From positions 62,001 to 126,000 of the IMG/VR virus record IMGVR_UViG_3300024336_000005: a stretch of DNA of 64,000 nt, one strand, 5' to 3'. Below the pieces are notes generated by a model. That model did not search any database. It was not told where the DNA came from and saw nothing but the letters and a program-made list of their open reading frames with translations. Numbering within the stretch: the first letter of the stretch is position 1; each line of letters opens with the position of its first letter. Made by a program: the position numbers and the translations under genes. Of this stretch, positions 7,468 through 36,146 are shown piece after piece.

Positions 7468-7501
7468 TGGGCATCTGCTTCTACCTTGAGACGAATGCCT
7501 G

Positions 7502-7909: not shown

Positions 7910-8268
7910 GGAAGATCTGTCGCAACTGTTACTCGATCTGTGGCCGCTGCGCTCGTTGTGAGCGCTTGCGGCTGATGAAGTTGACCAAGAGGAAGATCAA
8001 GAAGAACTCCGAGAAGAGCTCTCGGGTTAAGGAGTTGGGGTGTGGTTGGTCCTTCTCGTTGAAGGACCCGCTCTACTTCAAGGAGGAGGATGAACAGGGG
8101 GAGTTGATGGAGTTCAGCTTCCCCAGGGAGTTCGAGGTGAGCTGCGTCGGGCTGGAGGACGTGGATGTTTTGGCGGCGGCCCTCGATGGCTGCAACGGTG
8201 AGCTCAGCATCGCCGAGGAAGCGGCGGTCTGGGAGTACCGGATCGTCAGCTTGGATGAGGTGGCATGA
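7906..8268 (+). CDS. hypothetical protein
   Basis: ATGA overlap at 7906; start corrected from ORF track. Confidence 0.7.
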   Translation: MRKICRNCYSICGRCARCERLRLMKLTKRKIKKNSEKSSRVKELGCGWSFSLKDPLYFKEEDEQGELMEFSFPREFEVSCVGLEDVDVLAAALDGCNGELSIAEEAAVWEYRIVSLDEVA

Positions 8269-8834: not shown

Positions 8835-8837
8835 GGA

Positions 8838-9668
8838 ATGCGCATTCGTACTGATCTGTTCTTCGCTTCGAAGGTTGAGTTCAATTTGTTCTGGATTGGA
8901 GACAGTGGGTTCTCCTGTGGGGGTGACACCTTGCGGAAGATCTTCGGCCTCAGCGCTACTGGTTGCGGTGAGTCCGCCCACTGGGAGATGGTCTCCTCGA
9001 AGGGAGCAATGGCACAGTTCACGCTGGGTGTCTGCAAGGGTTGCCTGAACAAGGCGGCACCTCAGGCCGAGACCCGCTACTGGGCGGCTGATATCATCAG
9101 TGCCGTGTGGCACCCCAATCATCGGGATGTGGCCTGTGAGGAGCCCGGTTGTGAGGAGACGATCTCCTACAACAGCAAGGCACATGGCAATGTGTGTGCC
9201 TTGCATGGATGCAAGTACATCCATGGGTATCTGAAGGAGATGTACATCGAGAAGGACTTCCTCGAGACGGAGAAGGAGCTGAAGTTGATCTGGGCAATGT
9301 TCCCGGAGAGTCGTCCTCAATACATCGAGGTCAAGAGCGACCGAGATGTGAGGGACTACATGCTGGTCCATGAGGGTGGCATGGAAGAGACCATCATGGT
9401 GGCTGCCAAGCGGTTGCTCAGCAACCCCGATGATCTGGCACACCACTTCCCTCCCTACCGGGAGCTCCGGGAGCTGGGTCGGACGTGCCTCTTACCGTTG
9501 CACCATCCTCGGGTGGTGTACTTGCAGCGACAGTGCGCCCCGGTCTTGGCGGCCATCCAGAGTGGTGACTTCAAGAGCTTGGCTGGGTTCATTCATGAGC
9601 CTCCCGTTGAGGTGGAGTTCTCCACCTTCGCGGCCTTCAACCCTGCTGATGTCATGGAGATGAAGTAA
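8838..9668 (+). CDS. hypothetical protein, Cys-rich
   Basis: ORF in array. Confidence 0.8.
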   Translation: MRIRTDLFFASKVEFNLFWIGDSGFSCGGDTLRKIFGLSATGCGESAHWEMVSSKGAMAQFTLGVCKGCLNKAAPQAETRYWAADIISAVWHPNHRDVACEEPGCEETISYNSKAHGNVCALHGCKYIHGYLKEMYIEKDFLETEKELKLIWAMFPESRPQYIEVKSDRDVRDYMLVHEGGMEETIMVAAKRLLSNPDDLAHHFPPYRELRELGRTCLLPLHHPRVVYLQRQCAPVLAAIQSGDFKSLAGFIHEPPVEVEFSTFAAFNPADVMEMK

Positions 9669-9669
9669 T

Positions 9670-10170
9670 ATGACCATCGAAGATATCATCCTTGAGAAGG
9701 AGTGGCTCATCAAGACGATGGGCCTGTGTCCTTCCTCAATGCTGACCCTCAAGGAGCTGCAGGCCATCCATGCAGGCCCCCTGGACGAACTCATGAACCA
9801 TGAGAAGGAGTGTGAGAAGCTCGAAGAGCAGGAGGTGGTTGCTGCGGCGGAGCCGGAATGGACGCCCAGTGGGGAGGTGAAGTCCTTCCACGCCCTGTGG
9901 GATTTCTGGGAGATGCCTGAGCACATTATTGAGGGGTGGGAGGATGCTCTCATCTGCCTCCTTCACTGGAAGGAGAGCTTCACTGAATATGGCACTCACA
10001 TGCAGTTGAGGTACGATGTGGGCCAGGATTATTGGAGCACCTCTACTGGAGTGAAGAACAAATCCTGGCGGGTTCGACTCCTTGACCCTGAGGTGGAGTG
10101 GCATTCGGCAGTGAAGGAGGTAGAGGCCGTCTTGGCTTGGTTGGCTGAGAGGGAGCTGATCTCCTTCTAG
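9670..10170 (+). CDS. hypothetical protein
   Basis: ORF in array. Confidence 0.8.
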   Translation: MTIEDIILEKEWLIKTMGLCPSSMLTLKELQAIHAGPLDELMNHEKECEKLEEQEVVAAAEPEWTPSGEVKSFHALWDFWEMPEHIIEGWEDALICLLHWKESFTEYGTHMQLRYDVGQDYWSTSTGVKNKSWRVRLLDPEVEWHSAVKEVEAVLAWLAERELISF

Positions 10171-10399
10171 GAGCTACATACTTAGGCCTCACCACGAATG
10201 TGGTGGGGTCAATAGGATGTAGGTCCGTTGTTCTGGCCCTCTTCCCTTGGAGCCGGCGGAGCCGGCTGTGTTTACTTTGGATAGTTCTGTGAATGTTAGG
10301 AGGACGTGATTGCTGATAGTTGGATGTTCCTGTTCGTTCCCCTGGAAGTGTAAACTTAGCACACCTCTTGAGGAGATGTGCTCAGGGGCTCAGGCCACT

Positions 10400-10495
10400 A
10401 TGGCCAAGCTTAGGAGGAAGAGTGAGAAAGGTAAGAAACCTCCTAAAAGAGGTCAGAAGAATAAGAAGCTGGCATCTCGAAGGAGGTCAGCTTAA
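10400..10495 (+). CDS. small basic peptide
   Basis: MAKLRRKSEKGKK... after AGGGG RBS-like motif. Confidence 0.4.
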   Translation: MAKLRRKSEKGKKPPKRGQKNKKLASRRRSA

Positions 10496-10535
10496 GAGCG
10501 GAGGATTCCACCTTCCGGAGCTCATTCTTTGGCAA

Positions 10536-10808
10536 ATGACTAAAGATGAGAATCTGGTGGTGGATGCTATGGACCTTCCCGTTGCTGCCTTGTGCGCAGC
10601 GGGGTTTTCTCAGTCGGATGCTACTGTCATAAACATGGCAGCCTATGCCCTGTTCTTAGATAAGGATTGGGTGGTGTCGATGGAGGAGTATGAGAGCTTC
10701 CCCTCAACTGTTGCAGTAGCGGAGCTGCTGTGGTTAGAGATGGTTGAAGCTGCATTTGAGGTTGATCGTCAGGTCAGCCTCGCCATGTTGGAACTAGTGA
10801 GGAAGTAA
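10536..10808 (+). CDS. hypothetical protein
   Basis: in-frame ATG at 10536; TAATG overlap with next gene. Confidence 0.6.
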   Translation: MTKDENLVVDAMDLPVAALCAAGFSQSDATVINMAAYALFLDKDWVVSMEEYESFPSTVAVAELLWLEMVEAAFEVDRQVSLAMLELVRK

Positions 10809-11116
10809 TGGGATTGAGAGTTCGTCGGTCAGTGATGGGATACTTTAGGGGAGCCTGTTGGTGCATCTCTCCCATTGTTGGGAACATTCTCGAGACTGCT
10901 GAGGAGGAGGAGCTGCAAGAGATGTATGAAGTACAGTTCTTCACAGAGAACTCGGAGCCTTCCCTCACGGAGGCGATGCGTGCCATGAGGGAAAATGTTG
11001 CTTCCCTCATTCGGTACAAGAAGGTCGCCGTTGGTCCCTTCGAGTGGTGTGCCGAAACCGGGAAGTTCGACGATTGGGGGGACTGGATCCCCCGAAAGCT
11101 GGCTGCAAAAGCGTAG
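10808..11116 (+). CDS. hypothetical protein
   Basis: ORF followed by hairpin and T-tract. Confidence 0.7.
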   Translation: MGLRVRRSVMGYFRGACWCISPIVGNILETAEEEELQEMYEVQFFTENSEPSLTEAMRAMRENVASLIRYKKVAVGPFEWCAETGKFDDWGDWIPRKLAAKA

Positions 11117-11121
11117 CCTTT

Positions 11122-11175
11122 GGAGCCGACGGAGTCGGCGGGGGAACCGGCTTCGCCGGTTGTCTTTTTGTTTGA
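11122..11175 (+). terminator. probable intrinsic terminator
   Basis: GCCGAC-GGA-GTCGGC and AACCGGC-TTC-GCCGGTT hairpins followed by T-rich tract. Confidence 0.6.
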
Positions 11176-11286
11176 CATCTTTTTAGGGTTTTAGGTTGTT
11201 TTCTTCTTTTACTTTCTCTGTGAGAGGGAGTGAGAGAGAGATTTCCCCCTAATTTGACTGAAAGCATAGCACTTTCCTAAAAGGAA

Positions 11287-11955
11287 GTGTTGCTTAGAAA
11301 AGAGGTATTTGTGAAGGGAATCAAGCTGGTTCTTCAGGACGGTCACAAGAAGATTGCGGCCATCAAGGCACTCCGCGCCGCCCTCCCGTTATGGGTGGGA
11401 CTGAAGAGGTGCAAGGAGTACGTCGAGGCGGGGTTTGTTCCCTTTACCTCGATTGAGGGAGTTGACCTCTGTGAACTCCAGAGGGTACTTTGGGGTTACA
11501 AGGTGGCGCTCTACCTTTGCGACGGAGAAAGGGCCACCCTCGGATGGCTCGTGGACCCCGATAACTTCTGGACGTCCTCATCCCTTCGGCTCACCCCCCC
11601 GGAGGGGATGGTGAGCCGGTACAAGGTGAGGGACATCCCGACCAAGCCGCTGACGGTGGAGATTCAGCTGCCTCCGCAACAGCGTCAGGATGTCCTCAAT
11701 CACGTTGATGATTGTACTGAGACCCGGCTGGCCTGGATTGACAGGCAGTTCGAAGAGATTCGATTCGCCGCGAAGTGCGGCGATTGGACCCTCACCTTGA
11801 CGGGCGACTTCCTCATCATCGGCAACGCCCATCTCGAGCCCCTACAGAGGCTGGTGGACAGCTTCTGCGTTCCGGTCGAGGAGCTCATCGGACAGATGGA
11901 GGCCACCATCAAAGACCTCCGGGAGCAGTTGAAGTCGGCAATGCCGACGGCCTAG
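11287..11955 (+). CDS. protein with N-terminal ribosomal protein bL12 C-terminal-domain-like motif
   Basis: KIAAIKALRAAL...GLKRCKEYVEAG resembles the bL12 CTD signature KVAVIKAVR...GLKEAKDLVE. Confidence 0.6.
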   Translation: MLLRKEVFVKGIKLVLQDGHKKIAAIKALRAALPLWVGLKRCKEYVEAGFVPFTSIEGVDLCELQRVLWGYKVALYLCDGERATLGWLVDPDNFWTSSSLRLTPPEGMVSRYKVRDIPTKPLTVEIQLPPQQRQDVLNHVDDCTETRLAWIDRQFEEIRFAAKCGDWTLTLTGDFLIIGNAHLEPLQRLVDSFCVPVEELIGQMEATIKDLREQLKSAMPTA

Positions 11956-11998
11956 TTGTTGTTGTTGAAAGCTTAGTGGAAATAGGAAGGAAGAAAAA

Positions 11999-12445
11999 AT
12001 GAACCAGCCGAACTTCATCGCCCTCACCTCCCGCATCTACCAGGCCAAGGGGCCCAAGGTCTCGACCATCGAGGATGTCAAGACGGGGCATGTGCGCATC
12101 ATGTCCTCGGACGTTGAGCCCGTGGACAGCCGGGATGTGTGGGCCGAGCAGTCCAAGGCCTACGAGGACTACCGCATCACCGTGAAGGCCTCCATCGAGG
12201 AGGAGGTGACCATCGAGGAGGCCAATGCGGACTCCCTCCAGGAGGCCTTGAGCACGGCCATCGCCAATGGCGACGAGGTGATGGCCGAGGGCCTCAAGAC
12301 GGCACTGGAGAACTCTGAGAAGGGCATCGTGGAGCTCAAGGTCTCCGAGGACTTGCTGGTCAAGGCGGAAGCGGAGCGCCTCGCCACCAACGCCATCAAC
12401 ATCTTCGAGCACAAGGTGGCCTGCTTCCAGGCTCTCGTCGGCTAG
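11999..12445 (+). CDS. hypothetical coiled-coil protein
   Basis: ORF with strong codon bias and RBS. Confidence 0.85.
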   Translation: MNQPNFIALTSRIYQAKGPKVSTIEDVKTGHVRIMSSDVEPVDSRDVWAEQSKAYEDYRITVKASIEEEVTIEEANADSLQEALSTAIANGDEVMAEGLKTALENSEKGIVELKVSEDLLVKAEAERLATNAINIFEHKVACFQALVG

Positions 12446-12830
12446 GGCAAGTTCACATTCACCGGAGTAGGAAGATGCTGGACTAGGCGGAGGGAAACCG
12501 CAGAACCTCTTTTACTTTACTTAGATATTAGTTCAAAATAAAGGCGCTGAGACTGTGAATCGCATCAGAGACGACCCTTAGGGGATTGGAGGGCGGCCAG
12601 AGGTCGCCACACTTTTGAATTAAAGTCTTATATGTGACTGGTTGCCGACTCGCCGGAGCAGAGTCGTGAGCTACAAGGCCTCCAATGTTGGAGGTTGGGT
12701 GCGAAGAGGTTGGACGCCTCATAACCGTAGGCCCAGGAACTGTTTCAGTTCGTGTGAACGAAGTGAACGGGGAACCGAGTAGATGGTATTCATTGTTGCC
12801 CTACCGAAGACGTGTGAGGGCACTTGAAGA
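12446..12830 (+). ncRNA. putative large structured ncRNA (copy A of a two-member family)
   Basis: hairpin-rich intergenic gap sharing ordered motifs with 19655-20110. Confidence 0.45.
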
Positions 12831-12842
12831 AAGGATAAGTCC

Positions 12843-13640
12843 ATGTTCGATTTGCAGAACGAGAAGACCGCCGTTGAGACCACCGCCCCGTTCCGGAAGG
12901 TGCTCGCCACCGGCGAGGTCCAGCCCGTGTCGTTCGCGGGATTCGTCGAGAAGACGGAGGATGGTGGCTACCAGTTGCAGGAGACGCTGGACATCGAGAC
13001 CTGCATCGGGGTGCTGGGCTTCGCCGCTGCGGTGAAGTTCAACCAGCACACCAACGACGATGGCACGACCACCATCCGGGTGTCGGCCATCCAGGAGGGT
13101 AACACGAGCAAGAAGCGGCAGCGTGGTGACAGCCAGCGCACGAGCAAGGGGGCGAGTGAGTTCGGTCTCGGGACGTGGGTCTTCGCGACTCGGCTCGAGG
13201 TGCCGGGGCTGGATGTCGGCTCCATCCACACCTGCTACGGGACCATGGGCGAGGCGACGGTCTCCACCCCCAATGGCCCGGCCTTCACCGCCTCCAAGCC
13301 CGCCTTCGCGGGTGCGTTCGAGCAGGAGGTGACCAAGGCGGTGCAGCTGATGCTCTCGTCCTTCGTGGGCGCCGCCAGTGGTGGTGAGAGCATCGTGACC
13401 AACGACGAGGGGCTCATGGACACCCTCCGTTGGTTGCAGCGTGTGGTGCCGAACAAGTTCGGTCGTCTGGTCTTCCAGGGGGCCGCCTTCGAGGGGGCAA
13501 CCAACACCAGCCGCGTGAAGGCCGTCATCAACGGCAAGGAGGTCCAGGTGGCGCAGTCCACCAAGGGCTCCAACCGCGTCAAGACCGCCTCCAAGGCCAC
13601 CGCCTCGGACCTCGACGCCCTCGCGGCGCTCGAGGCCTAA
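12843..13640 (+). CDS. hypothetical protein
   Basis: ORF with strong codon bias, RBS aaagga. Confidence 0.85.
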   Translation: MFDLQNEKTAVETTAPFRKVLATGEVQPVSFAGFVEKTEDGGYQLQETLDIETCIGVLGFAAAVKFNQHTNDDGTTTIRVSAIQEGNTSKKRQRGDSQRTSKGASEFGLGTWVFATRLEVPGLDVGSIHTCYGTMGEATVSTPNGPAFTASKPAFAGAFEQEVTKAVQLMLSSFVGAASGGESIVTNDEGLMDTLRWLQRVVPNKFGRLVFQGAAFEGATNTSRVKAVINGKEVQVAQSTKGSNRVKTASKATASDLDALAALEA

Positions 13641-13809
13641 TCCCACCTCCCTGAAGTCCGGTGAGTCGTTCCCTACGGGTTGAGCGACTCCCGGCAACCT
13701 CCCCTTGTTTATCTTTGTTGTTGATATAGGTGTGTATGAACGTAGTGTACGACTGTTGTTGTACCCTATGGGCATGCACACCTGTGTATGTTGGCAGACA
13801 GGAGTGTGT

Positions 13810-14379
13810 ATGAAGATTGCCATTATTGGCACCGCTGGTAGGAGCAAAGCTCCGCAGCATCGGATGACACGGAAATTGTATGGCAGCATGTTGGATGCTG
13901 CCTGGCAGATGATGTTGAAGAACTGTGAGGATTGGAGTGATGTGACACTTCAGTCTGGTGGAGCCGCGTGGGCTGACCATGTGGCTGTGAGCGCCTATAA
14001 GCTGGCATTGGTGTGTGGAAAGCCCTTCAAGGGGCTGAACCTGTACCTGCCGGCCCCCTTTGATGGGGACAAGTACGCCGCCACTAAGGCGGGTGGTATC
14101 TCCAACTACTATCATCGGCTTTTCACGCAGGCCGTTGGAACAGACACTCTTGTGGGGTTGGCTGATGTCATGCAGCTGCCCGGTGTGATGGTGGATGTTG
14201 GAGTGGGGTTCCATCAGCGGAACCTCGAAGTTGGGAAGGCTGACGTCCTGTTGGCCTTTACCTGGGGCGAAGGCAGCGGCCCCGCCGACGGTGGCACGAA
14301 GCACTGTTGGAAAAATTCTCATGCGCCGACGAAGGTGCACTTCAAGCTCTCTGAGCTGAACGGACAGTCCGATGAGTGA
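13810..14379 (+). CDS. SLOG/YspA-like Rossmann nucleotide-binding protein
   Basis: MKIAIIGTAGR, SGGAAWADH, RN...AFTWG...GGT motifs. Confidence 0.6.
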   Translation: MKIAIIGTAGRSKAPQHRMTRKLYGSMLDAAWQMMLKNCEDWSDVTLQSGGAAWADHVAVSAYKLALVCGKPFKGLNLYLPAPFDGDKYAATKAGGISNYYHRLFTQAVGTDTLVGLADVMQLPGVMVDVGVGFHQRNLEVGKADVLLAFTWGEGSGPADGGTKHCWKNSHAPTKVHFKLSELNGQSDE

Positions 14380-17300
14380 TACTCTTTTTGGTAAGAACGC
14401 TGACGAGAAGTCCCTCCTCGAGGAGGCAGGCGACGGTGTTGTGGACAACAGCACCGTCATCGACCACGACAAGAAGACTGACCGCATTCTCGCCGATACG
14501 GCCGTGGTTCGCGGTGCCGCCATGTTTGTCCAGACGGACGACTTGTGGCACCACGGGGTCAGTCAGCACGGGCTGGCCCGTTCGAACACCCGCTACGGGG
14601 AGACCACCCAGTTGGTCTTGGTCCCGGAGGGTTCCGATGGCTGTGAGACCATCATCATCCACAGTCTCCGTGGTGGAACTCAGGAGGTCACCGTTAAGCG
14701 CCGGGCCCTGCCGATGCAGGAGGAGGTGGTCGAGCGAGTCCTCGCCGCCACCGATGAGGCACTTGCGCCCTACATGCGGAAGTACTCCTGTCGCACGCGG
14801 GAGCAGTTGGTGGGGAGGTGGCCTGCGCAAGGCCGTGGCCCCATCTACATCGACAGTGTCGCCACGCGCTTGACGCACAACGACTGGGTCGATGACCTGG
14901 GAGACGTGCTGAGCGATGAGCTGCTGCGCTCGATGCAGCGGTACATGAAGGCCATGAGACAGGACATCCCGCCGAGTCAGGATGATGTGGAAATCATCCA
15001 CTGGGCCATGGGCGAGGCTGGCTTGAAGCCCGTTGAGCTCTACCAGATGTTGCTCATGCAGCAAGAGACCCGACAGCGGCTGCTGGTCCTTCTCGGTGAG
15101 GACGAGTTGAAGCGGGACTCCGCCCTCAACTCGTACGACCCTTCTCCGGCCATCCCGGACGGGTGGGGCTTGCCCTCCTCCTTGGAGGAGCCGATGAAGT
15201 GCAAGAAGGCGTGGAATGCCTTCCTCAAGTCCGGTGGCGAGGTGGCGCTCTCGTTGGACCACATCGTCTTCGATGACGGCGATGGCTTCGACCGGGTGAC
15301 CATTGAGGGCCTTGCGGCCATCAAGATGACCCGAGATGGAGTGAACCGTCTGGTCAAGGCTCACAGTGGCATCACGCTGCTGGAGACTACGGCCAACAAT
15401 GGTCAGTTCCCGCCGTCCCATCGGGAGTTGACCGCCGCAGTGGTGGCCGTTCACGAGAAGTGGGCGGACTCCTTCGAAGCGTGGCAGGAGCGACGTACGC
15501 CCAGTGTCCGCTGGGTGGCTCTGGGCAACCTCACGGGTGGCATCGGTGGCGGTGGGGGTGACCTCAACGGCACCGATGAGTTCGACGTCGACGCGGACAT
15601 CCGTCCGAAGCCCGGCTTCCAGGACATCGACCCGGTGGAGTTGAAGAACCCGGAGGAGGCCTGGCTCAAGAAGCAGGTCATGGGGATGTCCACTCCGGAC
15701 CCCATCACTCAGTTCTTTGGGGACACCGGGTCGTTCGCTTCGGACCTACCCATTGGCCGTCGGAAGATTGGGGAGGAAGTGTACCTCCCCGGAGGCCACC
15801 CGTTGGCTCAGGGCATCATGGACATCATGGCGGCTGCCAATGGCCAGCGGGACTACGTCTCCTTGGGTCTGACGGATGACGCCTCCTCGATGGTTCGCAT
15901 GGAGTGGCCGAAGAACCTCGTGGAGACCTCCACGATGATGATGCCGACCATGGCGGGCGACAAGGTGGAGGTGGAGGTGTTGGTCTTCCACCCCGTCTAT
16001 GAGGGGGTGGACTTGTTCAACCTCATCCTCAGCACCGATTGGGTGGACCACGCGGGCCAGGTGAAGGACTTCTTCGCCGACTACACTGTCAAGGTGAATG
16101 GCGTCAAGCAGTGGGGGCTCAACCAGCAGGTGAGCCCTGGGCAGAAGGTGATGGAGGCGTCCTATACCGACGACGAGGGCCAGTACTGGTTCAAGTCGGT
16201 GGACCTCGAGATTGAGCCCGGTGCTCGGGTGGCCTTCGACGCGGGCATGCCGGTGGGGGAGGTCATCGAGACCGTGCGGGACGGTCAGACCTTCTGCCAG
16301 GCCCTCGTTCGGGTCTGGCCGGCGAAGGTCAATGTCGGCTACCGTCATCGGTTGCACGAGATTGATGCGAATGGCGAGGCCGTTCCCATCGACGAGAACG
16401 ACCCTCTGTTGGCCATCTACGGCATCGAGCAGCAGGGAGATGTGCTCTGGCACGTGATGTTCAAGAGCCGCTTGGACTTCCTCATCACCAGCCTGGGCTG
16501 CACCAAGGTGCCGGTCCTGGCCCTGGTGGAGACGGGCGAGGAGGCCATCCCGATGGTGGTCGAGCAGTACGCGAAGGTGCACTTCCCGGCGCTGTTCAAC
16601 TGGCTCTCGCTGCTGAGCGAGAACTACCACGAGGCCGTCTCCGACATGACCGAGTGGTCGGAGGGGGACGGTGAGGACCTGCTGCGGCTGGTCACCGAGG
16701 AACTGATGACCATCCAGACGCTGGCCTTGGAGCTCATCGTCGAGGATAACATCGGTTGCGTGGCCGACTACATGGACGACGTCAACGTGGCATTGGGCGA
16801 TGCTTGCATCGGAACCTCCAGCAAGTTCCCTGACCGGAACGGCAACGAGACGAGCGCCTATGGTGCCCTCCTCGTTGGGAACACGGGGCGTCTCTACCCC
16901 CTGTTGGACAGCCTGAAGCCCGGTCCGCAGAACGTGTTCGACCTCCCGGAGGAGGCGCACACGAACATCACCAAGATGTTCAAGGCCATGGGCTACCTGT
17001 ACAACGACCGGAGGCCCTTGGGTGCCGACAGGTTGCAGCAGATGGTGGGAGAGCAGTTCTTCTTCACCCATCCCCTGCGTCGTGCTCCGCGTCGTGTGAA
17101 CGACCGCTGGCACCGGGCGGCGAAGGCCGTGACGTACACCAAGGACCCGAGCCTGTTCAGCTCGGGCATGGTCGGCAACTTGGTGAGCCAGTTGAGCGCC
17201 GCGATGTTCCCCATCAACGATGGTGGGCTGAACTTGTTCCACCCCTCGGAGGAGCACATGAAGGCGGCCAACTGGGACTATGAGAAGGCGATGCGTCTCC

Positions 17301-17761
17301 ACCTCATCGAAATCTTCCCGGAGGACCTCTGGGGTCGGACGGCGGCGAGTCGCGCTCACCGCTACCTGACGCGGTTCAACCAGGACCGTGGGTTCTTCAA
17401 GGAGGACGCCAAGGCGCTGCGTTGGCTCATCTGCAACATCTTCAACTTCGAGGACCGCACCTTGGTCCATCCCACCTTGTCGGGTGGGGAGGCCATCAAG
17501 GCCTTCGGTAGGGGTGTGTTGGTTGAGAGTTTTGTGAAGGGTTGGGTGAACGAGAGGAACGAGGACAAGAAGGCACAGCGCTTGACCGCCCTGGACCGTC
17601 GAGTCGCGCTCCTCACCCCCACGCCGCCCCTCCTCTTCCGTTTCTTGGCGCTCTTGGAGAAGAACGTCGAGTTGGAGGCCTTCAACCGGGCCTTGATGCA
17701 GGCCGCCCCGAAGTTGGGCCCCTTGGGGGTCCAGCACATCCGCAACCGTCAGAACGGTTGA
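14372..17761 (+). CDS. large hypothetical protein, possibly a highly diverged RNA polymerase beta-like subunit
   Basis: 1129 codons; only weak motif echoes (GLAR..YG..PEG..IHSL, SMQR). The ORF is certain, the function is not. Confidence 0.8.
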   Translation: MSDTLFGKNADEKSLLEEAGDGVVDNSTVIDHDKKTDRILADTAVVRGAAMFVQTDDLWHHGVSQHGLARSNTRYGETTQLVLVPEGSDGCETIIIHSLRGGTQEVTVKRRALPMQEEVVERVLAATDEALAPYMRKYSCRTREQLVGRWPAQGRGPIYIDSVATRLTHNDWVDDLGDVLSDELLRSMQRYMKAMRQDIPPSQDDVEIIHWAMGEAGLKPVELYQMLLMQQETRQRLLVLLGEDELKRDSALNSYDPSPAIPDGWGLPSSLEEPMKCKKAWNAFLKSGGEVALSLDHIVFDDGDGFDRVTIEGLAAIKMTRDGVNRLVKAHSGITLLETTANNGQFPPSHRELTAAVVAVHEKWADSFEAWQERRTPSVRWVALGNLTGGIGGGGGDLNGTDEFDVDADIRPKPGFQDIDPVELKNPEEAWLKKQVMGMSTPDPITQFFGDTGSFASDLPIGRRKIGEEVYLPGGHPLAQGIMDIMAAANGQRDYVSLGLTDDASSMVRMEWPKNLVETSTMMMPTMAGDKVEVEVLVFHPVYEGVDLFNLILSTDWVDHAGQVKDFFADYTVKVNGVKQWGLNQQVSPGQKVMEASYTDDEGQYWFKSVDLEIEPGARVAFDAGMPVGEVIETVRDGQTFCQALVRVWPAKVNVGYRHRLHEIDANGEAVPIDENDPLLAIYGIEQQGDVLWHVMFKSRLDFLITSLGCTKVPVLALVETGEEAIPMVVEQYAKVHFPALFNWLSLLSENYHEAVSDMTEWSEGDGEDLLRLVTEELMTIQTLALELIVEDNIGCVADYMDDVNVALGDACIGTSSKFPDRNGNETSAYGALLVGNTGRLYPLLDSLKPGPQNVFDLPEEAHTNITKMFKAMGYLYNDRRPLGADRLQQMVGEQFFFTHPLRRAPRRVNDRWHRAAKAVTYTKDPSLFSSGMVGNLVSQLSAAMFPINDGGLNLFHPSEEHMKAANWDYEKAMRLHLIEIFPEDLWGRTAASRAHRYLTRFNQDRGFFKEDAKALRWLICNIFNFEDRTLVHPTLSGGEAIKAFGRGVLVESFVKGWVNERNEDKKAQRLTALDRRVALLTPTPPLLFRFLALLEKNVELEAFNRALMQAAPKLGPLGVQHIRNRQNG

Positions 17762-18209
17762 GCGAGGTGGGTGGTTGATTGAGAGGTTGGTGGATTAGGT
17801 GAGATGAAGGTTCTCAGCTAGGGGCATCGGCCCCTTAGCTGGGCCTAGCCTAGTCGCCATTTCTTCCATCGTTGGAGTATCTTCAGCTTTGGGTTTTGGT
17901 TTTGAAAGGTTGGTTGTAGGTAATAAAGGTTAGAAAAAAATTCTTAAGGCAGCAGAAGCCGAACTGAGTGTGTCGGTACTGCCGTCTTTGAACCCTGGCC
18001 GGGGTTAAGGCAAAAAGGATCCCGGAACAAGCATAAGGGATCCGAAAAGTGACCGGTCCTGAGGTGGGTCGATGAGGGTTGAGCCAGGAGGGAGTAAGTT
18101 CTCTCGATAGTCTGGCTGTGTAGGGACCTTAGGTTGCTGTTGCGCTGCTAACGTAGAACCTTGGGGAATTAAAGAAACCCGTGAAGGTGCATTTCTCAAA
18201 GAGGCTGTC

Positions 18210-20650: not shown

Positions 20651-21100
20651 ATGTCTCGTGTAATCATTCTTCGCGGACTTCCCGGCAGCGGGAAGAGTTC
20701 GCTCTGTACGAACTTTGATGTGGAGGCGGTTGTTTGTAGCGCCGATGACTTCTTCTACGATGAGGAGGACAACTACATCTTCGATGGCTCTAAGCTGGCG
20801 CTGGCCCATCAGGCTTGCCAGGAGAAGTTCTCGACTGCCCTCCTGGATGGCAGTCGACTCATTATCGTGGACAACACCAACACGCAGCACTGGGAGATGA
20901 AGCCCTACCTGGACATGGCCTATCTGGCCGATGCTCGGGTCACGGTCATCTCCGCCTTCGATGGAGGTTGCACCGATGAGGAGCTGGCCGAGCGGAACAC
21001 GCATGGCGTCCCTCAGGATTCCATCGCGGGCATGAGGGCTCGGTTCGAGCACGACTGGAAGGCCCATGACGCGCGTCCTCCATGGGAGCGGGGCAAGTGA
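20651..21100 (+). CDS. P-loop (AAA_33-type) polynucleotide kinase-like protein
   Basis: GLPGSGKS Walker A, SADDFF, IIVDNTN, RNTHGVP. Confidence 0.85.
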   Translation: MSRVIILRGLPGSGKSSLCTNFDVEAVVCSADDFFYDEEDNYIFDGSKLALAHQACQEKFSTALLDGSRLIIVDNTNTQHWEMKPYLDMAYLADARVTVISAFDGGCTDEELAERNTHGVPQDSIAGMRARFEHDWKAHDARPPWERGK

Positions 21101-21587: not shown

Positions 21588-21962
21588 ATGGCAATTGAGA
21601 AAATGCTGGACGCGGCAGCTGATTGGTGGTTCGCACAGTTCCAGAACCCCACGAAGGACAACGGAGCTTCAGATTTTGCCAATTTGATGGCTCAAGGGAT
21701 GGCTCTGGAACTTGCGAACAGTACGCCGTGTCCTACCGACCCGCGTCCCTTCGGGGATGCGTTGAAGAAGGCTTACGCTGATCGTCCTTTTAACACCTTG
21801 TCAGCAGACTATGCTCCAGGCGGACCTCTCGCTGATGCGATGGATACGGCGGGTATCTCTCGGGAGAGAGCCCCTTGGAAGACGGTCATGTGGCTCGAGC
21901 TGGGCCGCGTGGTCGTGCGGGCGGGGTATGGAGCCCCGGAAGTGGTGATTTTTCGATCCTAA
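21588..21962 (+). CDS. hypothetical protein
   Basis: ORF in array. Confidence 0.8.
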   Translation: MAIEKMLDAAADWWFAQFQNPTKDNGASDFANLMAQGMALELANSTPCPTDPRPFGDALKKAYADRPFNTLSADYAPGGPLADAMDTAGISRERAPWKTVMWLELGRVVVRAGYGAPEVVIFRS

Positions 21963-21974
21963 AGGTTCACAGTC

Positions 21975-22014
21975 TAAGATACCCTTAAGTGGGCGGAGGG
22001 GTGAAAGGCCCCTA
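21975..22014 (+). repeat. 40-nt direct repeat copy 1 (copy 2 at 22183-22223)
   Basis: TAAGATACCCTTAA(G/C)TGGGCG..GGGGTG(A/G)AAGGCCCC..TA. Confidence 0.85.
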
Positions 22015-22032
22015 AGGTAAACAAGCTTTTTT

Positions 22033-22163
22033 AGAGGGATGCTCAGGGCAGGTTCATACCTGGAGGTTCGAATCCTCACGGGCTACGGCCCGGAGGGCAT
22101 TAAGTAGTCCTTCCTTTGAATCAGAGAGGAGGGAGCGCCGAAATCAACAGAGCTGATTCCTCT
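22033..22163 (+). ncRNA. circularly permuted tRNA-like RNA (YrlA-type topology)
   Basis: T-arm GAGG-TTCGAAT-CCTC, then closed stem CGGGC-TACG-GCCCG, then D-like GGGC-ATTAAGTA-GTCC; outer stem AGAGG..GCTC/GAGC..CCTCT. Confidence 0.6.
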
Positions 22164-22182
22164 ATTGATGCCTCTAAGAGTT

Positions 22183-22223
22183 TAAGATACCCTTAACTGG
22201 GCGAGGGGGTGGAAGGCCCCCTA
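22183..22223 (+). repeat. 40-nt direct repeat copy 2
   Basis: matches 21975-22014. Confidence 0.85.
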
Positions 22224-22224
22224 T

Positions 22225-22328
22225 GGACCATTAAGCTCAAGTGGTTGCAGTCGCTGTTAAGACTCAACCCAAAGGATAGAGCTTCTTCCCCAGAGGAGAG
22301 GTTGCAGGTTCGACACCTGCATGGTTCA
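22225..22328 (+). ncRNA. tRNA-like RNA with hairpin inserted in D-loop and 6-nt anticodon loop
   Basis: acceptor GGACCAT/ATGGTTC, T-arm GCAGG-TTCGACA-CCTGC, insert 22244-22268. Confidence 0.65.
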
Positions 22329-22333
22329 CTAAT

Positions 22334-22408
22334 GGGCCTCAAGCTTTAGCGGTGAAGCAGTTGACTTTTAATCTTCAGAACAGGGTTCGAGTCCCTGGGG
22401 GCCCACCA
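22334..22408 (+). tRNA. trnK: tRNA-Lys(UUU)
   Basis: cloverleaf, loop CTTTTAA, CCA end; two mismatches in anticodon stem. Confidence 0.8.
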
Positions 22409-23868: not shown

Positions 23869-24487
23869 GGGGGTGTCAGGTTTCGACAGGGTATAAATAG
23901 GAAGCGATAGCAGGTCCCGCTAAGAACGGCAGCGGGTTAGAAAGCAAGTTCAAATTGTAAACGGCAACGTAAACAACATGGCGGTGGCTGCCTGATAGCT
24001 TCCCTTCGGGGAATCTATTGGTAGTGCATACCCTCTAGTCTCTGAGTTAGACCTCTTTAAGTAAGGGCTAGAGTACGTGAAATTGAGGAATCGGACAAAG
24101 AAAAGTCCAATGTCGAGTGGATGGAAACTGAAGCTTCGTAGCTGCTTGCAGATACGAGATTGGGAACGTGGTAACACGTACAAGGATAAGCCAAACTAGT
24201 TGCGGAAGACCTCCTTGATGGTTAAGAGCTACCCGCTGACAGTAAACTCATCAAAGGAAATCGTATTACTCTTTTGATGAACCTATAAGTACGAACCTCC
24301 CTGGTTGTTTCTACCATGAGGGGAGTGAGAAAACAGAGCAAGGCGCAGCTTGGGGCCGACAGGAGTTAGCCTCAAGTGGAGTGGCAAGTGCAAATCCTCT
24401 CATTTGTTTTCATCTAAATGAAACTAAACCTGTAGAAGTTGTATTTCGAAAATGTTCTGGACGGGAGTTCAATTCTCCCCACCTCCA
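23869..24487 (+). ncRNA. ssrA: tmRNA (unusually long, 619 nt)
   Basis: 5' GGGGGTGTCAGGTTTCGAC, tag ORF 23957-23995 (A)VNGNVNNMAVAA*, 3' CTAAACCTGTAG...GGACGGGAGTTCAATTCTCCCCACCTCCA. Confidence 0.9.
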
Positions 24488-24808
24488 CATTTCTTCACGC
24501 TGAGTGGCCGTGCTGATTGACGGCGGCTGAAAGCAAACGCAATAAACTACTCGCGCGCTTGGGTTAACCAACCGGAATCAAACAGGATACTGTTCGCGCG
24601 AAATCGGTTAGCCAGCCCTAATAGGTAGTGAGCGTTTGTAGAAAGTGTCTTAGACGGTATGTCAGGGAAGGTACAACCTGGACTCCGGATAGGCGTGAGG
24701 TGGTTCAGGGTTGTAGGTAAGAGAACGGAAAAGGTAATCTGAAAACGCCTTTCTGAAACCCATAAACCTAACAAAGGGGAGCCCGAGTGGTGCAAGCAGC
24801 CCCCAGAG

Positions 24809-24950
24809 AGTTGAAAAGCTAGGCTCTCCAGTTTCTCATAACTTATAGCTCTAGCTTAAGTTCTAGAGCGCGCCCTCCGAAGGTTGAGATTTGGGTGTAA
24901 GAATCCCAAGAGCTATAAGTTATGAAAAATTAGAGCCTAGCTTTTCAGTT
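24809..24950 (+). ncRNA. degenerate tRNA-like core (loop CTCCGAA) inside a long inverted repeat
   Basis: TTGAAAAGCTAGGCTCT..TCATAACTTATAGCTCT pairs with AGAGCTATAAGTTATGA..AGAGCCTAGCTTTTCAG. Confidence 0.65.
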
Positions 24951-25039
24951 TCTGACATAGAGTAACCCTGGCCCGGGGAAATACAGGGCTTGAGTGATCC
25001 GATAAATGGGTCCTGACTTTAACCTCTATGTCGATTAGA

Positions 25040-25170
25040 CGTGCCAGCTAACCACTGGCTAGTGGGAGTGGCGAGAATCCCACGATGAGAAGCGGAGTCG
25101 TTTCCGTAAAAAAAGCCCCGGACCTCGGAGAGGTCGGCAATCTTCTGTCGTTAGTCCCTAAACCATGGAG
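25040..25170 (+). ncRNA. structured ncRNA, copy A (copy B at 36471-36614)
   Basis: conserved blocks with compensatory stem changes between copies. Confidence 0.7.
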
Positions 25171-26215
25171 TAGTGTGATGAGAGGCTTGCCTCAGTGATT
25201 CACAGTTATCGATGAAGTGGAGGGGATAGAGAAGCTGTGGTGTGCAGCCATAGTGGCTTGGGGTTTTAACCGCGAAGCCAAATTTCTGCCCCACCAATAG
25301 GGTAAAAATGGGATGCTTGGTGATCATCTAAAACATCCTTGAGCTATGCAGTATGCTCAAGCGCCCGCCTGGGTAATCCAGTGGGTTTAGAGAGGACATG
25401 GTGCTCCTCCTGGATACATAGCCATAAAGCCTTATTGGTTGGAGGCGGCTGTGTAATACCGACCACAATACTAGATAGTAATTTAATGTTGGAGCAACTT
25501 TCTAGTTACAGTTGCTCCCGTCTACTAGCGACGAATATAAACCGATTATGCTAGTTAAATCGGAGAATTAGGCCCTTCGGCGGTAGGAGTTCCCGCGTGG
25601 TCACTGTGCTTTTATACCCACAGACTACATATATGGATTGGGCCATTTTACCAGATGATCTGTCCCGGCAGATGCATAGGCAGCCACCTCGTTAAAAACT
25701 GGTACCGGGCACTATCTTGCAGTGGAAGCTCTTAGACCTCCGATATAAAGGGGGATTAGGTAAATCTTAGGTGCCTAAGTTAGCGAACCTGGAAGCGCCC
25801 CACGGGCAGGACTTAGCCATCCCTCATGGTGAAAGCACAAGCTGAGGGGCTTGTGTTGGTTCAATGTCTCTACACCGTTCCTGCCGGTTATGCAGGAGAG
25901 TGTTGTGAGTTCCGTGTGAGAACTCTCATGTGTGGCTGGCATTAATTGATAAGCGGGTAGAGTCGCTTATCAACAGCTCTCGACGCGGGCGAGTAAACAG
26001 AGGGGTTGCTCCTTCTGCCCGCACTCTTCTGTTCCGTCTGTAGGGTAAAAGCAGCGGGCCCGATTGGTGGGCTACGATATAATACGGACCAATTGAGGTT
26101 GGGAATCTTAAACAACAAGCTCTCGAAATTACAGAATCAGAGAGCATTCCTCTTGGCCTGGCAAGTTAAGAAGCTTAGCGGCTTCAACCAGGACCTTTTC
26201 TACAAGGAAAAAGAA

Positions 26216-27332: not shown

Positions 27333-27761
27333 ATGAAAGCCATTAAAAAGACCAAGACAGTGCATGTTCCTGCTCATGACAGAGAGGACACCCATCATCA
27401 TTGTCCCGTTTGCGATGGGATTTGTAAGCACATTGATGACACCAGGGGTGGCCCGATGTCATCTGGTTGGAGCTGGTGGGCGTGCGGCTCCTGTTTTTGG
27501 ACTGAGCTCCTTGACGAGGAAACAGTCCAAGAGATGATTATTCGTCGAGCAGTAAAGAATCAAGGCTTCAATCAGGATACTCCTCGAGATCAAGTGATTG
27601 CGATTCTGTCAGGTATTCATGGACATTTAGAGAATGCGCTAAATGGACATGTTTCTCGAACTAAGTTCTATGATGTTCGCCTGCCTGAAAGCCTCGGACA
27701 GCTTGAAAGCGTATTCAAACTTCTTCGAGGGTGGCCAGATTTGGATACCTGGAAGAAATAG
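27333..27761 (+). CDS. hypothetical protein, Zn-ribbon
   Basis: CPVCDG, CGSC. Confidence 0.75.
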   Translation: MKAIKKTKTVHVPAHDREDTHHHCPVCDGICKHIDDTRGGPMSSGWSWWACGSCFWTELLDEETVQEMIIRRAVKNQGFNQDTPRDQVIAILSGIHGHLENALNGHVSRTKFYDVRLPESLGQLESVFKLLRGWPDLDTWKK

Positions 27762-28893: not shown

Positions 28894-28985
28894 CAAGAAG
28901 TAAGCGTAAATGGTACTGCTACTGGCCTAAGGTCGAAAGACCTGAATCCGGTGTGTTGGAGGTTCGAATCCTCCCTTCTTGGCCA
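28894..28985 (+). tRNA. tRNA-like (probably Gln CUG-derived) with GAAA hairpin inserted in anticodon loop
   Basis: CAAGAAG/CTTCTTG acceptor, GCCA end, AGGTC-GAAA-GACCT in loop. Confidence 0.65.
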
Positions 28986-29225: not shown

Positions 29226-29421
29226 TAGGAGTTGAGATCCAGTTCCCGTCGGGGTGCCTACTGGTTAAACAAAAAGGCTCGATGAGTAGACTTGTGTCTG
29301 GAGAGACTCCGCCGGTTCGAGGCAGACGGTGCTCAAAGCCTCCCTTTTCTTGGAGAGTGAGATGGTTAAACTAATAGGGCATGTCCCTGAGACAAAGAGG
29401 GGTCCCTTTAGGCGCAATACA

Positions 29422-30105
29422 ATGGAAGCTAAGGTAATGGAAACTCGACAGGAACGTCATGAGAGACATCTCAGGACGATGAGAGCGTATTTGGCAGGAG
29501 GGGAGAATTTCCTGGCCGCCAAGGCTCTCCAATTTGCAAAGAATCTAATGACAGGACTAAGGAAGGATGGGGAAACTCCAGCCTTCCACCATCCCCTGTC
29601 GGTGGCTCGCTACTTACGAGCTCACCGTCGTAGTCTTATTTATGGAGAGGAGACCATTGCGGCTGCCTTTCTTCATGATATCCTCGAAGACTTTGGTGAT
29701 ACTGTCACTAGAGAGCAACTTAGAGACCTGTTTGGGGAAAGAGTAGCGACTGCCGTATGGGCTCTCAGCAAGAAGAGCAACGGAACGTCAAAGACTCCCG
29801 ATACCTACTTCATGGGCATTGCATCTAATGAGATTGCATCTGTTGTGAAGGCTGTAGATCGATTGCACAATCTCCACACCATGGAGGGCGTGTTCTCTGT
29901 TGAGAAGCAATTGGACTACATCAAAGAAGCAAGAGATAGATTTATCCCCATGCTTATCGAAGCAGGAGATAGGTTTCCCGAACAGTTTGATGTCTATGAA
30001 AACCTCAAGATGAACTTGAGGCTTCAAACCATCCCGATGGAACGACTGTGCGAAGCTTTGATGAGGCTAAAAGATGAAGTTCGAAGCGGTGATTGTCGAG
30101 GGTGA
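29422..30105 (+). CDS. RelA/SpoT-type HD-domain hydrolase (small alarmone hydrolase-like)
   Basis: HPLSVA, AAFLHDILED, VKAVDRLHNLHTM. Confidence 0.8.
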   Translation: MEAKVMETRQERHERHLRTMRAYLAGGENFLAAKALQFAKNLMTGLRKDGETPAFHHPLSVARYLRAHRRSLIYGEETIAAAFLHDILEDFGDTVTREQLRDLFGERVATAVWALSKKSNGTSKTPDTYFMGIASNEIASVVKAVDRLHNLHTMEGVFSVEKQLDYIKEARDRFIPMLIEAGDRFPEQFDVYENLKMNLRLQTIPMERLCEALMRLKDEVRSGDCRG

Positions 30106-32836: not shown

Positions 32837-33616
32837 ATGAAACCCACTTATATTGTTGGAGACGTTCATGGATGTCTCCGAGAGCTTCAGACACTTCTTT
32901 CTCTTATCTTTCAAAAGATTGGTGCCAATCCAGGGACTATTGTCTTTGTTGGTGATCTGATTGACAAGGGGCCTGATAGCCTCGGATGCCTTCGTCAGGT
33001 CAAAGACCTACAGAAGTATCCGATGGGGATTGAAGTCGTCTTCGTCATCGGCAACCATGAGGATAAGTTGATCCGTTGGTTGCAGCACGAGCAGAAGATT
33101 GATCTGGGTCTTGCTGTAACTAATCCCATTAAGGCATTGCCTGAGTGGGATGCAGCCATGAGGACATGGGGGCTCAAGCAAGGTGGCCTTAGGTGGCTAC
33201 GTTCCTGTCCTATGTCTTGGTCTTCCGGTAATGGTAAGTACCATGTAGTCCATGCTGGGATTGAGCCCAAAAGGAAAGCAATTCCAGTTTGCCCCTGGCT
33301 TGAGGCCAAGGGCAAAGACAAGACTGTCTTCTTTACTCGGTATGTGAACCCTGAGAAGGGTAAGATGGTAGCACTTGGTCAGGAGGTTTTTCCTCGTGAC
33401 AAGTGGTGGGGTGAGCTTTATGATGGCCGTTTTGGTACTGTCATCTATGGACATCAGCCCTTTGATGAAGTTCGACGAGATGCCCATGCAGTAGGCATTG
33501 ATACCTCTTGTGTTTATGGAGGCTGCCTGACTGCATATGATCCAACTACTGGAGAGACTCTTGAGGTGAAGGCCTTTGATGTCTATTCAGAGAGAATGAA
33601 AGACTACCCTTCATGA
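32837..33616 (+). CDS. calcineurin-like metallophosphoesterase (ApaH/PrpE/Pnkp type)
   Basis: GDVHG, GDLIDKG, GNHE, VHAG, YGH, IDTSCVYGG. Confidence 0.9.
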   Translation: MKPTYIVGDVHGCLRELQTLLSLIFQKIGANPGTIVFVGDLIDKGPDSLGCLRQVKDLQKYPMGIEVVFVIGNHEDKLIRWLQHEQKIDLGLAVTNPIKALPEWDAAMRTWGLKQGGLRWLRSCPMSWSSGNGKYHVVHAGIEPKRKAIPVCPWLEAKGKDKTVFFTRYVNPEKGKMVALGQEVFPRDKWWGELYDGRFGTVIYGHQPFDEVRRDAHAVGIDTSCVYGGCLTAYDPTTGETLEVKAFDVYSERMKDYPS

Positions 33617-34784: not shown

Positions 34785-36146
34785 ATGTACCAAGCAATTG
34801 TTGCCAACATTCACACCCGTCCACATCCGGGAGCTGATCGAATTCAGCTAGGAACTGTATGTGGCCATCAGGTTGTATGCGGGCTTGACATTGCTGATGG
34901 TACTCTCGGTGTGTTCTTTCCTTGCGATGGCCAGCTAAGTCATGACTTCTGTGTGGCCAATGATGAGTACCCTCGGCTTGATGAACAGGGGAAGAAGGTC
35001 GGTGGCGGATTCATCAATCCTAAGAACCGTCGCGTAAAGGCACAAAGCTTTCGTGGTGAAAAGTCGGATGGCTACTGGGTTCCAATGGATAAGCTCATTA
35101 AGTGGGCAAATCATGTTTGGCGCGAGGATGACAAGGGAGACCATGTCCTCTTGTCCAACCGTGTGCAGAGCCTTGTAGAAGGTGACACCTTTGATTCCGT
35201 TGGCGATGTGCCTTTGTGTAACAAGTATGTAACTGAGAAGACCCTTAAGGCTCTTCAGAATCAGGCCAAGCAGGCTCGCAAGACTCATACTCAGTTCGCT
35301 CAGCATATTGATACCAAGCAGTTCCGATACAACATTGGAAACATCCCGGAGGGTTCCATTGTATGGATATCTGAAAAGCTTCACGGTACTAGCGGTCGCT
35401 ATGGGTACGTTCAAGCTCTTCGTGAGCTCGGTGGCCGTTTTAATGCTTTTGTTCGCAGGGCTTTTGATTGGTGCGCTGATAAGCTTGGTCTTGATGTAAG
35501 CCCTAAGTATGAACATGTTATGGGCTCACGAAGGGTTGAGCTCTCTGCTCAGTCAGAAGGGTTTTACGGCTCGATAGATTTCCGTGCAAATGTAGCAAAC
35601 AAGTTGAAGGGAAATCTCCTCAAGGGTGAGTGCATTTATGGAGAGCTAGTGGGTTGGACTGGTCCTGATTCTTTGATCATGGGCCGCCACTCAACCAAGA
35701 AGCTCGGCAAGGAGCTTCGCAAGCAGTACGGAGAAGAGGTCACCTATACTTATGGACAGCCAAACGGTTGTTCTGAGTTCTTCGTTTATCGAATCACTCG
35801 TGTTGGCCCAGATGGTCAGACGATTGAGCTCGGTGAGCGTGAGATGCGGGCAAGGGCGAGGGTCCTCGGCTTCAAGACTCCAGAGCTCTTTGCGGGGCCG
35901 ATGGTAGTTCACGACTATGCTGATGATAAGTGGGTCGATGGTGGCAAGACGCTCATGCAGGTCGTGGAAGCCTACCTAAATGGACCATCGATTGAAGACT
36001 CACGACATCCTCGAGAGGGCGTCGTGATTAGGGTTGACAGGCCTGACGGGACTACCATCTGGCTCAAGGACAAGAACCATCCGTTCAAGGTAATGGAGGG
36101 TATCGCTAAGGATTCCGGCGAAGCAGACATGGAAGAAAGCTCATGA
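34785..36146 (+). CDS. ATP-dependent RNA ligase, Rnl2/DRB0094-like with N-terminal OB fold
   Basis: HPGADRI, EKLHGTS (motif I), YGELVG, FFVYRI, REGVVIR, LKDKN. Confidence 0.85.
   Translation: MYQAIVANIHTRPHPGADRIQLGTVCGHQVVCGLDIADGTLGVFFPCDGQLSHDFCVANDEYPRLDEQGKKVGGGFINPKNRRVKAQSFRGEKSDGYWVPMDKLIKWANHVWREDDKGDHVLLSNRVQSLVEGDTFDSVGDVPLCNKYVTEKTLKALQNQAKQARKTHTQFAQHIDTKQFRYNIGNIPEGSIVWISEKLHGTSGRYGYVQALRELGGRFNAFVRRAFDWCADKLGLDVSPKYEHVMGSRRVELSAQSEGFYGSIDFRANVANKLKGNLLKGECIYGELVGWTGPDSLIMGRHSTKKLGKELRKQYGEEVTYTYGQPNGCSEFFVYRITRVGPDGQTIELGEREMRARARVLGFKTPELFAGPMVVHDYADDKWVDGGKTLMQVVEAYLNGPSIEDSRHPREGVVIRVDRPDGTTIWLKDKNHPFKVMEGIAKDSGEADMEESS

Follow-up and report, generated by a model that had tools for sequence, protein, structure and literature searches.

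Phage RNase III hairpins, whether of the T7 R1.1 type or belonging to the RNase III step in T4 tRNA-cluster processing, are about 50-60 nt long and have simple loops. The TMERs of murine gammaherpesvirus 68 consist of hairpins arranged in tandem after a tRNA-like unit, from which they are separated by tRNase Z.

The RNAs associated with Ro60/Rsr offer a further set of tRNA-like architectures. YrlA is a permuted tRNA mimic in which a T arm is followed by a closed acceptor hairpin and a D arm. Its elbow nucleotides are conserved, the 5' strand of its terminal stem carries the motif GNCGAAN0-1G close to the 5' end, and its gene is found no more than about 4 kb from rsr on the same strand (PMC4201824; 10.1101/312249). 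In Yrn1 of D. radiodurans, the paired 5' and 3' ends continue the acceptor-like helix of a degenerate tRNA-like head that includes an anticodon-arm-like hairpin (PMC4201824). The Thermus phage phiLo encodes Yrl1 and Yrl2, which bind both the phage Ro60 and the host PNPase, and for which the presence of CGAA in a bulge or hairpin served as the search criterion (PMC12135203).

We analysed a 64,000-nt stretch of a jumbo phage genome, referred to here as the window (bases 62001-126000 of a 204,008-bp IMG/VR virus record rated complete by CheckV; all positions are those of the window unless a locus is named). At 24805-24953 on the plus strand lies an element in which a near-perfect 44-bp duplex (5+17+5+17 bp) carries a 58-nt tRNA-like head. 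It resembles Yrn1 in the continuation of the acceptor-like helix, in its anticodon-arm-like hairpin and in the presence of Ro60/Rsr in the genome. Unlike Yrn1, it has neither the metazoan-type Ro-binding helix nor a conserved T arm and is not beside rsr, and its stalk is far longer and more perfect than the Yrn1 stem. With YrlA (RF02553, which includes mycobacteriophage members) the element shares the form of a tRNA mimic without a free CCA end on a terminal stem, and, like the mycobacteriophage YrlA, it belongs to a phage with tRNA arrays, a tmRNA and Ro60. YrlA differs in its circular permutation, its conserved elbow, the GNCGAA of its 5' strand and its closeness to rsr.

The phiLo Yrl1 and Yrl2 RNAs are likewise phage-encoded stem-bulge-stem or hairpin RNAs with CGAA, but they do not have the shape of a tRNA and are encoded immediately upstream of the Ro60 gene, whereas the CGAA of the element sits in an anticodon-like loop. 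The RNase III hairpins are comparable in being long, bulged and part of a polycistronic transcript beside stable-RNA genes, with bulges that could direct cleavage. The element departs from them in its 58-nt tRNA-like head on 44 bp, and its cleavage is only predicted. The TMERs provide a viral precedent for joining a non-chargeable tRNA-like unit to a long hairpin destined for a dsRNA-processing pathway, although the element has its hairpin in the lengthened acceptor stem and belongs to a virus of bacteria.

A tRNA-like head on an extended acceptor stem

The sequence-only reading had described a long, near-perfect inverted repeat extending the acceptor stem TAGCTCT/AGAGCTA, a loop CT-CCG-AA and the lack of a CCA end. 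All of this proved correct: the repeat forms 44 bp in the predicted fold, the loop lies within the anticodon-like arm (Table 1), and AGT stands in place of CCA. The predicted minimum free energy of the element is -68.6 kcal/mol, against -36.7 +/- 3.5 in dinucleotide shuffles (z = -9.1), and the element remains an independent domain when 660 nt are folded jointly. With 11 exact 12-mer seeds, where others have at most 5, it is the strongest inverted repeat of the 204-kb genome; with 9-mer seeds the corresponding figures in the window are 17 and at most 5. The stalk reaches 32-37 bp beyond the 7-bp acceptor, and the divergence of its arms over 44 bp amounts to one mismatch and three bulged bases. 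Two features of interest for its possible fate are both present in the predicted fold, namely two turns or so, or more, of double-stranded RNA as at RNase III sites (17, 5, 17 (+5) bp), and ends paired in a bulged terminal helix as in Y RNAs (CC bulge, G bulge and C/A mismatch).

Table 1. Features of the element and of its surroundings, in window positions
Feature	Position	Strand	Remarks
PNK-like ATPase gene	20651-21100		
Phage tmRNA	23869-24490	+	Rfam RF00023, 83.5 bits
Stalk, 5' arm	24805-24852	+	pair probability about 1
Stalk helix, 5 bp	24805-24809 / 24949-24953	+	
Stalk, bulged G	24810	+	
Stalk helix, 17 bp	24811-24827 / 24932-24948	+	
Stalk, CC bulge	24828-24829	+	
Stalk helix, 5 bp	24830-24834 / 24927-24931	+	
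Stalk, C/A mismatch	24835 / 24926	+	
Stalk helix, 17 bp	24836-24852 / 24909-24925	+	
Stalk, 3' arm	24909-24953	+	pair probability about 1
tRNA-Arg(CCG)-like head	24844-24918	+	ARAGORN -ps95; called in 1/3000 shuffles; own-tRNA covariance model 21.5 bits
Acceptor of head	24845-24851 / 24910-24916	+	7-8 bp in the ARAGORN call
D-like arm	24854-24869	+	stem GCTT/GAGC, 8-nt loop; P 0.86
Anticodon-like arm	24870-24886	+	7-nt loop CTCCGAA at 24875-24881; anticodon CCG at 24877-24879
CGAA / TCCGAAGG motif in anticodon-like arm	24876-24883	+	
T-like arm	24891-24909	+	stem TTGGG/CCCAA, 9-nt loop; P 0.2
HD phosphohydrolase gene	29329-30105		
Metallophosphoesterase gene	32837-33616		
RNA ligase gene	34785-36146		
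Ro60/Rsr orthologue (TROVE + vWA_Ro60)	40773-42416	+	Pfam E 9e-47 and 2e-39
YrlA-like T-AS-D core	47376-47428 (region 47340-47450)	+	RF02553, 21.1 bits, below the gathering score

Both strands of so long and near-perfect an inverted repeat fold strongly, and a role in DNA alone would account for this, be it as a cruciform, as a protein-binding palindrome (origin, packaging or recombination) or as a mobile palindromic element. We consider such a role hardly credible. The plus strand folds better (-68.6, against -63.0 on the minus strand), with three stalk positions that are G-U wobbles on the plus strand and would be A/C on the minus strand, and one position the reverse. The cumulative GC skew rises steadily through the element, and no target-site duplication is visible. 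The repeat is present in a single copy in the genome, and the arm pattern gave no multi-copy match in 185,579 species genomes, only eight scattered chance matches, none with a partner arm; a MITE or REP-like repeat was rejected on the same grounds, there being no flanking duplication. A role in DNA alone would also leave the significantly tRNA-like interior unexplained.

The head was not called by ARAGORN at its default setting, but was called as tRNA-Arg(CCG) at -ps95 (95% of the default threshold). The call was obtained on the plus strand only, the strand that also carries every tRNA, the tmRNA and the genes. When the stalk was kept and the 58 nt of the interior were randomised, 1/3000 shuffles were called at -ps95 and 8/3000 at -ps90. 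We also built a covariance model from 15 tRNAs of the phage; it aligned 24845-24917 along its entire length with a score of 21.5 bits (E about 2.6e-4 in 88 kb), and it gives the ordinary tRNAs of this phage 45-76 bits and the odd ones 17-40. The head is therefore tRNA-like beyond chance by three measures, but weakly so. It keeps T8, A9 and a discriminator A at 24918, with a variable region of 4 nt. The Rfam tRNA model RF00005 gave no match at E <= 10 in 2.4 kb around the element. ViennaRNA prefers a different fold of the head, with a helix GCGCCC/GGGTGT (P about 0.75) and the anticodon stem at P 0.03, and the cloverleaf, at -65.8 against -68.6 for the minimum free energy structure, is not the thermodynamic optimum. 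The tRNA of the phage most similar to the head is Arg(ACG) (68% identity), but its margin over the others (61-67%) is not a clear one.

The element is not a working tRNA. Its D loop (AAGTTCTA) is without GG, so that G18G19 are absent; its T loop (TGTAAGAAT) has 9 nt and no TTC, so that T54-psi55-C56 are absent; its anticodon stem is paired at only three of five positions; and its acceptor end is not free, as leader and trailer pair for 37 further bp. A related proposal is that the element is the precursor of a working tRNA-Arg(CCG), from which RNase III would remove the stalk before trimming by RNases P and Z and CCA addition by the host, yielding a tRNA that reads CGG. The anticodon loop is canonical (U33, CCG, A37), and the 7-bp acceptor, U8 and the discriminator A would suit this role. 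Moreover, the phage has Arg tRNAs for ACG, UCU and CCU, which leaves CGG as the only Arg codon without one; an encoded CCA is likewise missing from about half of the phage tRNAs; and M. smegmatis YrlA shows that such mimics can be acted on by RNase P and CCA addition (PMC4201824). We nonetheless regard a functional precursor as very unlikely, given the missing elbow nucleotides and 9-nt T loop, the two mispaired positions of the anticodon stem, the score of 21.5 bits against 45-76 for ordinary phage tRNAs and the silence of the Rfam tRNA model. No other tRNA of the phage needs a stalk.

The stalk itself sets the element apart from genuine tRNAs. Whereas the 40-nt flanks of 32 genuine tRNAs pair at -5 to -19 kcal/mol, those of the element do so at -43 kcal/mol. 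The flank duplex of the element is also the extreme among relaxed tRNA-like calls in the genome (-44.5 kcal/mol), and the best of 307 tRNA-like calls in 80 other Ro60-phage loci reached -30.6 kcal/mol. Since such flanks occur in none of the 32 true tRNAs and none of the 307 calls, the stalk is not a general processing feature, and a general pre-tRNA processing stem was rejected as an explanation. The proposal of a tRNA mimic on a dsRNA stalk is thus supported as a description of the anatomy, with a head that is significantly tRNA-like and a stalk that is unique among tRNA-like calls.

An RNA island and the search for counterparts of the element

ARAGORN finds 32 tRNAs in the whole genome and 26 in the window, all of the latter on the plus strand. 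The tmRNA lies 320 nt upstream of the element on the same strand and starts 6-8 nt past the stop of the preceding ORF, a sign that transcription probably runs through the island and that its product is then cut up. This tmRNA was missed by ARAGORN and owes its length of 622 nt to about 340 nt inserted into the pseudoknot region; by our own, tentative reading, the tag frame runs from GGC at 23963 as GNVNNMAVAA and then a stop. Genes for RNA handling (a PNK-like ATPase, HD, metallophosphoesterases, RNA ligase and Rsr) set the neighbourhood of the element. Neither an RNase III gene nor a gene for a CCA-adding enzyme was found in the phage.

Gene callers and ORF reading gave no convincing gene between 23861 and about 26100. 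This 2.3-kb gap contains the tmRNA and 1.7 kb of unassigned sequence, about 1.2 kb of which is left beyond the tmRNA and the element. No sigma-70-like promoter was found near the element and no plus-strand terminator adjoining it. Locally structured stretches also occur in the gap at 24954-25032, 25150-25300 and 25350-25550. A clean minus-strand terminator at 25116-25130, below a 58-aa minus-strand ORF at 25151-25327, makes up with that ORF the only minus-strand signals in an otherwise plus-strand island. The idea that the gap is a tRNA graveyard was rejected, as relaxed ARAGORN calls are no more frequent there than in coding controls, and no other tRNA relic stood out above coding-region noise.

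Several further features of the island were noted. Its G+C content (43-51% in the tRNA and RNA-repair part, 18000-64000) is lower than that of the structural-gene part (53-65%, 1-18000), which suggests a different history for the island. At 21960-22360 (plus strand), just upstream of tRNA-Lys, two tandem units of about 215 nt share a 13-nt opening motif (at about 21973 and 22186), and each closes with a T-arm-like hairpin (22061-22110 and 22300-22330) that gives a weak match to RF02553 or tRNA models; the units may be further tRNA-derived small RNAs. The motif TGAACTGAAG occurs on the plus strand at 44015, 44458, 47321 and 49134, directly after tRNA-His, tRNA-Glu and tRNA-Lys and before a YrlA-like RNA, and the last copy opens a 67-nt stretch (49134-49200) that scores 26.4 bits with the phage-tRNA model and is called by neither ARAGORN nor Rfam. 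Odd tRNAs are found at 50781-50868, 59165-59294, 28894-28982 and 52040-52119. They comprise, in this order, one call with a 4-base anticodon (tgta), one Rfam tRNA that spans 130 nt, probably because of an insertion or intron, and two borderline tRNA-like genes.

The same phage is present in at least 24 contigs from several samples, all about 100% identical. Beyond these copies, no homologue of the element was recovered from INPHARED (searched by blastn with the element, the tmRNA and the gap) or from IMG/VR (through three neighbouring proteins and a 19-mer of the head). The element is equally without a homologue among 85 loci searched with nhmmer and among 50 whole Ro60-phage records searched with a covariance model of the element, and the surroundings of the true tmRNAs in those 50 records held nothing alike. 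The head pattern gave only chance matches or the same phage in metagenome contigs. Over the element, Rfam (at the gathering score and at E <= 10) returned chance matches to miRNA hairpins only, with no ribozyme, GOLLD, ROOL, skipping-rope or similar family. Because there is no homologue and the copies are about 100% identical, no covariation can be counted in the stalk.

In a word-based protein search, the next relative of Rsr is 57% identical, and the ORF at 27333-27761 beside the element has no relative and is an ORFan. Two related jumbo phages, a 152-kb Logan contig (Rsr 53%) and a 204.2-kb ENA contig (Rsr 43%), are syntenic with the window only from 30896 onward; the tmRNA, the gap and the element are absent from the 40 kb and 31 kb examined in them, and three related phages yielded no homologue of the element. 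An amber-suppressor tRNA with anticodon CTA is encoded by both related Ro60 jumbo phages (L006:15814-15887, equivalent to L019:5481-5554, and 29557-29634 of the merged L135+L134) but not by the phage of the window, and it may reflect TAG recoding in the relatives.

The isolation of the element bears on a serious rival to the stalked mimic, namely that it is a dead, functionless tRNA-Arg(CCG) gene, in which a template switch nucleated at the acceptor (a quasipalindrome event) copied the leader in inverted form and decay followed. Since CGG is the rarest Arg codon (8.6% of Arg codons), loss of such a gene would have been cheap. The degenerate head fits decay, and so does the position of the element as a singleton in a non-conserved, ORFan-rich part that is missing from three related phages. 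In addition, the stalk is almost purely Watson-Crick, while old functional RNA stems usually contain many wobbles and mismatches, and its near-perfect pairing could equally reflect a recent inverted duplication at the DNA level. Three points lead us to regard a dead gene as somewhat unlikely. No second tRNA relic rises above coding-region noise in the gap; so long a palindrome (44 bp) endangers replication and is usually purged by phages; and decay has gone much further in the head than divergence has in the arms, which neutrality of both since a single event would not predict. The last point weighs most with us against pure decay: many tRNA features are gone from the head while the arms still match almost throughout, which suggests that pairing is maintained.

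Ro60/Rsr and the comparison with Y RNAs

The rsr gene lies 15.8 kb downstream of the element on the same strand. It gives concrete form to the Y RNA idea of the sequence-only reading, since the genome encodes a Ro60, and Ro60/Rsr is a possible protein partner for the element. Orthologues of Rsr, less than 60% identical, occur in 354 cultured phages, most of them cluster C mycobacteriophages and Streptomyces phages. The element has none of the four defining features of YrlA. Its arms follow the order D, anticodon arm, T and open extended acceptor, so that it is not permuted as YrlA is, and its distance from rsr exceeds that of YrlA genes, although the strand is shared. RF02553 gave no match at the element at E <= 10, while the controls were found (mycobacteriophage Catera at 36.1 bits and the relative L006 at 40.7 bits). 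There is no CGAA in the 5' arm of the stalk; when the head motif was compared with GNCGAAN0-1G and with GGUCCGA (PMC4201824), the only near-match was TCCGAAGG in the apical anticodon-like loop, which agrees with GNCGAA(N)G at 7/8 positions. A CGAA is expected by chance in about 1 in 5 heads of 58 nt.

A better candidate Y RNA for Rsr than the element, judging from its sequence, is the YrlA-like core 5 kb downstream of rsr, just before tRNA-Tyr. The surrounding candidate RNA consists of a V-like hairpin, a T arm, a closed acceptor hairpin capped by GAAA and a D arm; the YrlA-like RNA of L006 (40.7 bits), which has GCCGAATG upstream of it, occupies the corresponding position. Long near-perfect hairpins adjoin rsr in other Ro60 phages. 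Two lie less than 700 nt upstream of the gene with CGAA in the loop or 5' strand (L034:9260-9335 and L044:9305-9410, the head of the latter also carrying GGTCCGAGG), and a third is directly downstream of it (L006:11616-11665). These hairpins of L034, L044 and L006 could be unrecognised Y RNAs.

Could the phage Ro60/Rsr have the element as a second Y RNA, non-permuted like Yrn1 of D. radiodurans, with the protein on the paired ends and an effector, PNPase for instance, bound by the head? It is common for bacteria to have more than one Y RNA, and the two-module architecture, with a stem continuing the acceptor, is that of Yrn1 (PMC4201824). The helix is bulged (CC bulge, C/A mismatch), the genome carries rsr on the same strand, and the head has CGAA, by which the phiLo Yrl RNAs are defined (PMC12135203), within the 7/8 match. 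The CGAA-bearing hairpins upstream of rsr in L034 and L044 also fit such a role. The Yrn1-like topology, the bulged helix, the CGAA match and the hairpins in other phages are individually not significant, the CGAA of the head being of a kind that chance supplies readily. Known Y RNAs lie within about 4 kb of rsr, RF02553 detects its controls and is silent here, the 5' strand is without GNCGAA, and neither the T nor the D arm is conserved. Furthermore, a YrlA-like core already lies close to rsr, other Ro60 phages showed no counterpart of the element in 80 loci and 50 whole records, and perfect 17-bp helices, unlike known Y stems, would be targets of RNase III. On balance, we judge a second Y RNA to be an improbable explanation.

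A candidate stalked tRNA mimic

The explanation that we favour tentatively, in view of the strong and unique predicted structure, the tRNA-like head on the plus strand and the RNA-centred surroundings, is that the element is an orphan, plus-strand tRNA mimic derived from tRNA-Arg(CCG), transcribed but non-chargeable and carried on a stalk that RNase III could cleave. Such descent is plausible, since the phage tRNA set has a gap at CGG. The element would be transcribed within the long plus-strand precursor of the island. Judging from its anatomy, RNase P, RNase Z and aminoacyl-tRNA synthetase would be barred by the pairing of leader and trailer and by the lack of CCA and of elbow nucleotides, and for these reasons no decoding tRNA is likely to be made from it. 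The 17+5+17(+5) bp duplex would be a substrate for the RNase III of the host, and the cut would split the precursor and free a stable, stalked, non-chargeable tRNA-shaped RNA. More speculatively, the freed RNA may display an Arg-CCG anticodon-like loop with the CGAA motif and may bait or tether the phage Ro60 or some factor directed at tRNAs. The role of the stalked mimic may be that of a decoy or of a processing signal.

A bolder interpretation is that the element represents a new class of phage tRNA mimic, non-permuted and non-chargeable, resembling tRNA-Arg(CCG) and placed on a dsRNA stalk, which would be either a Y RNA of Yrn1 topology for Ro60 or bait for a host tRNA-directed defence enzyme (for example, an anticodon nuclease acting on arginine tRNA). 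We think this unlikely. As bait for a host defence enzyme, the element would complement the RNA-repair genes of the phage.

Phage tRNA arrays, tmRNAs, RNA-repair enzymes and Ro60 are increasingly seen as weapons in the conflict over host tRNA cleavage and RNA decay, and an unchargeable RNA with the shape of a tRNA, encoded among such genes, would offer a concrete candidate for a decoy or tether made of RNA. If Ro60 binds the element, the Yrn1 topology, in place of the permuted one of YrlA, would be represented among phage Y RNAs for the first time. If the element instead arose from a dead tRNA gene and a template switch, it would provide a clean example of the birth of a palindrome at tRNA acceptor stems.
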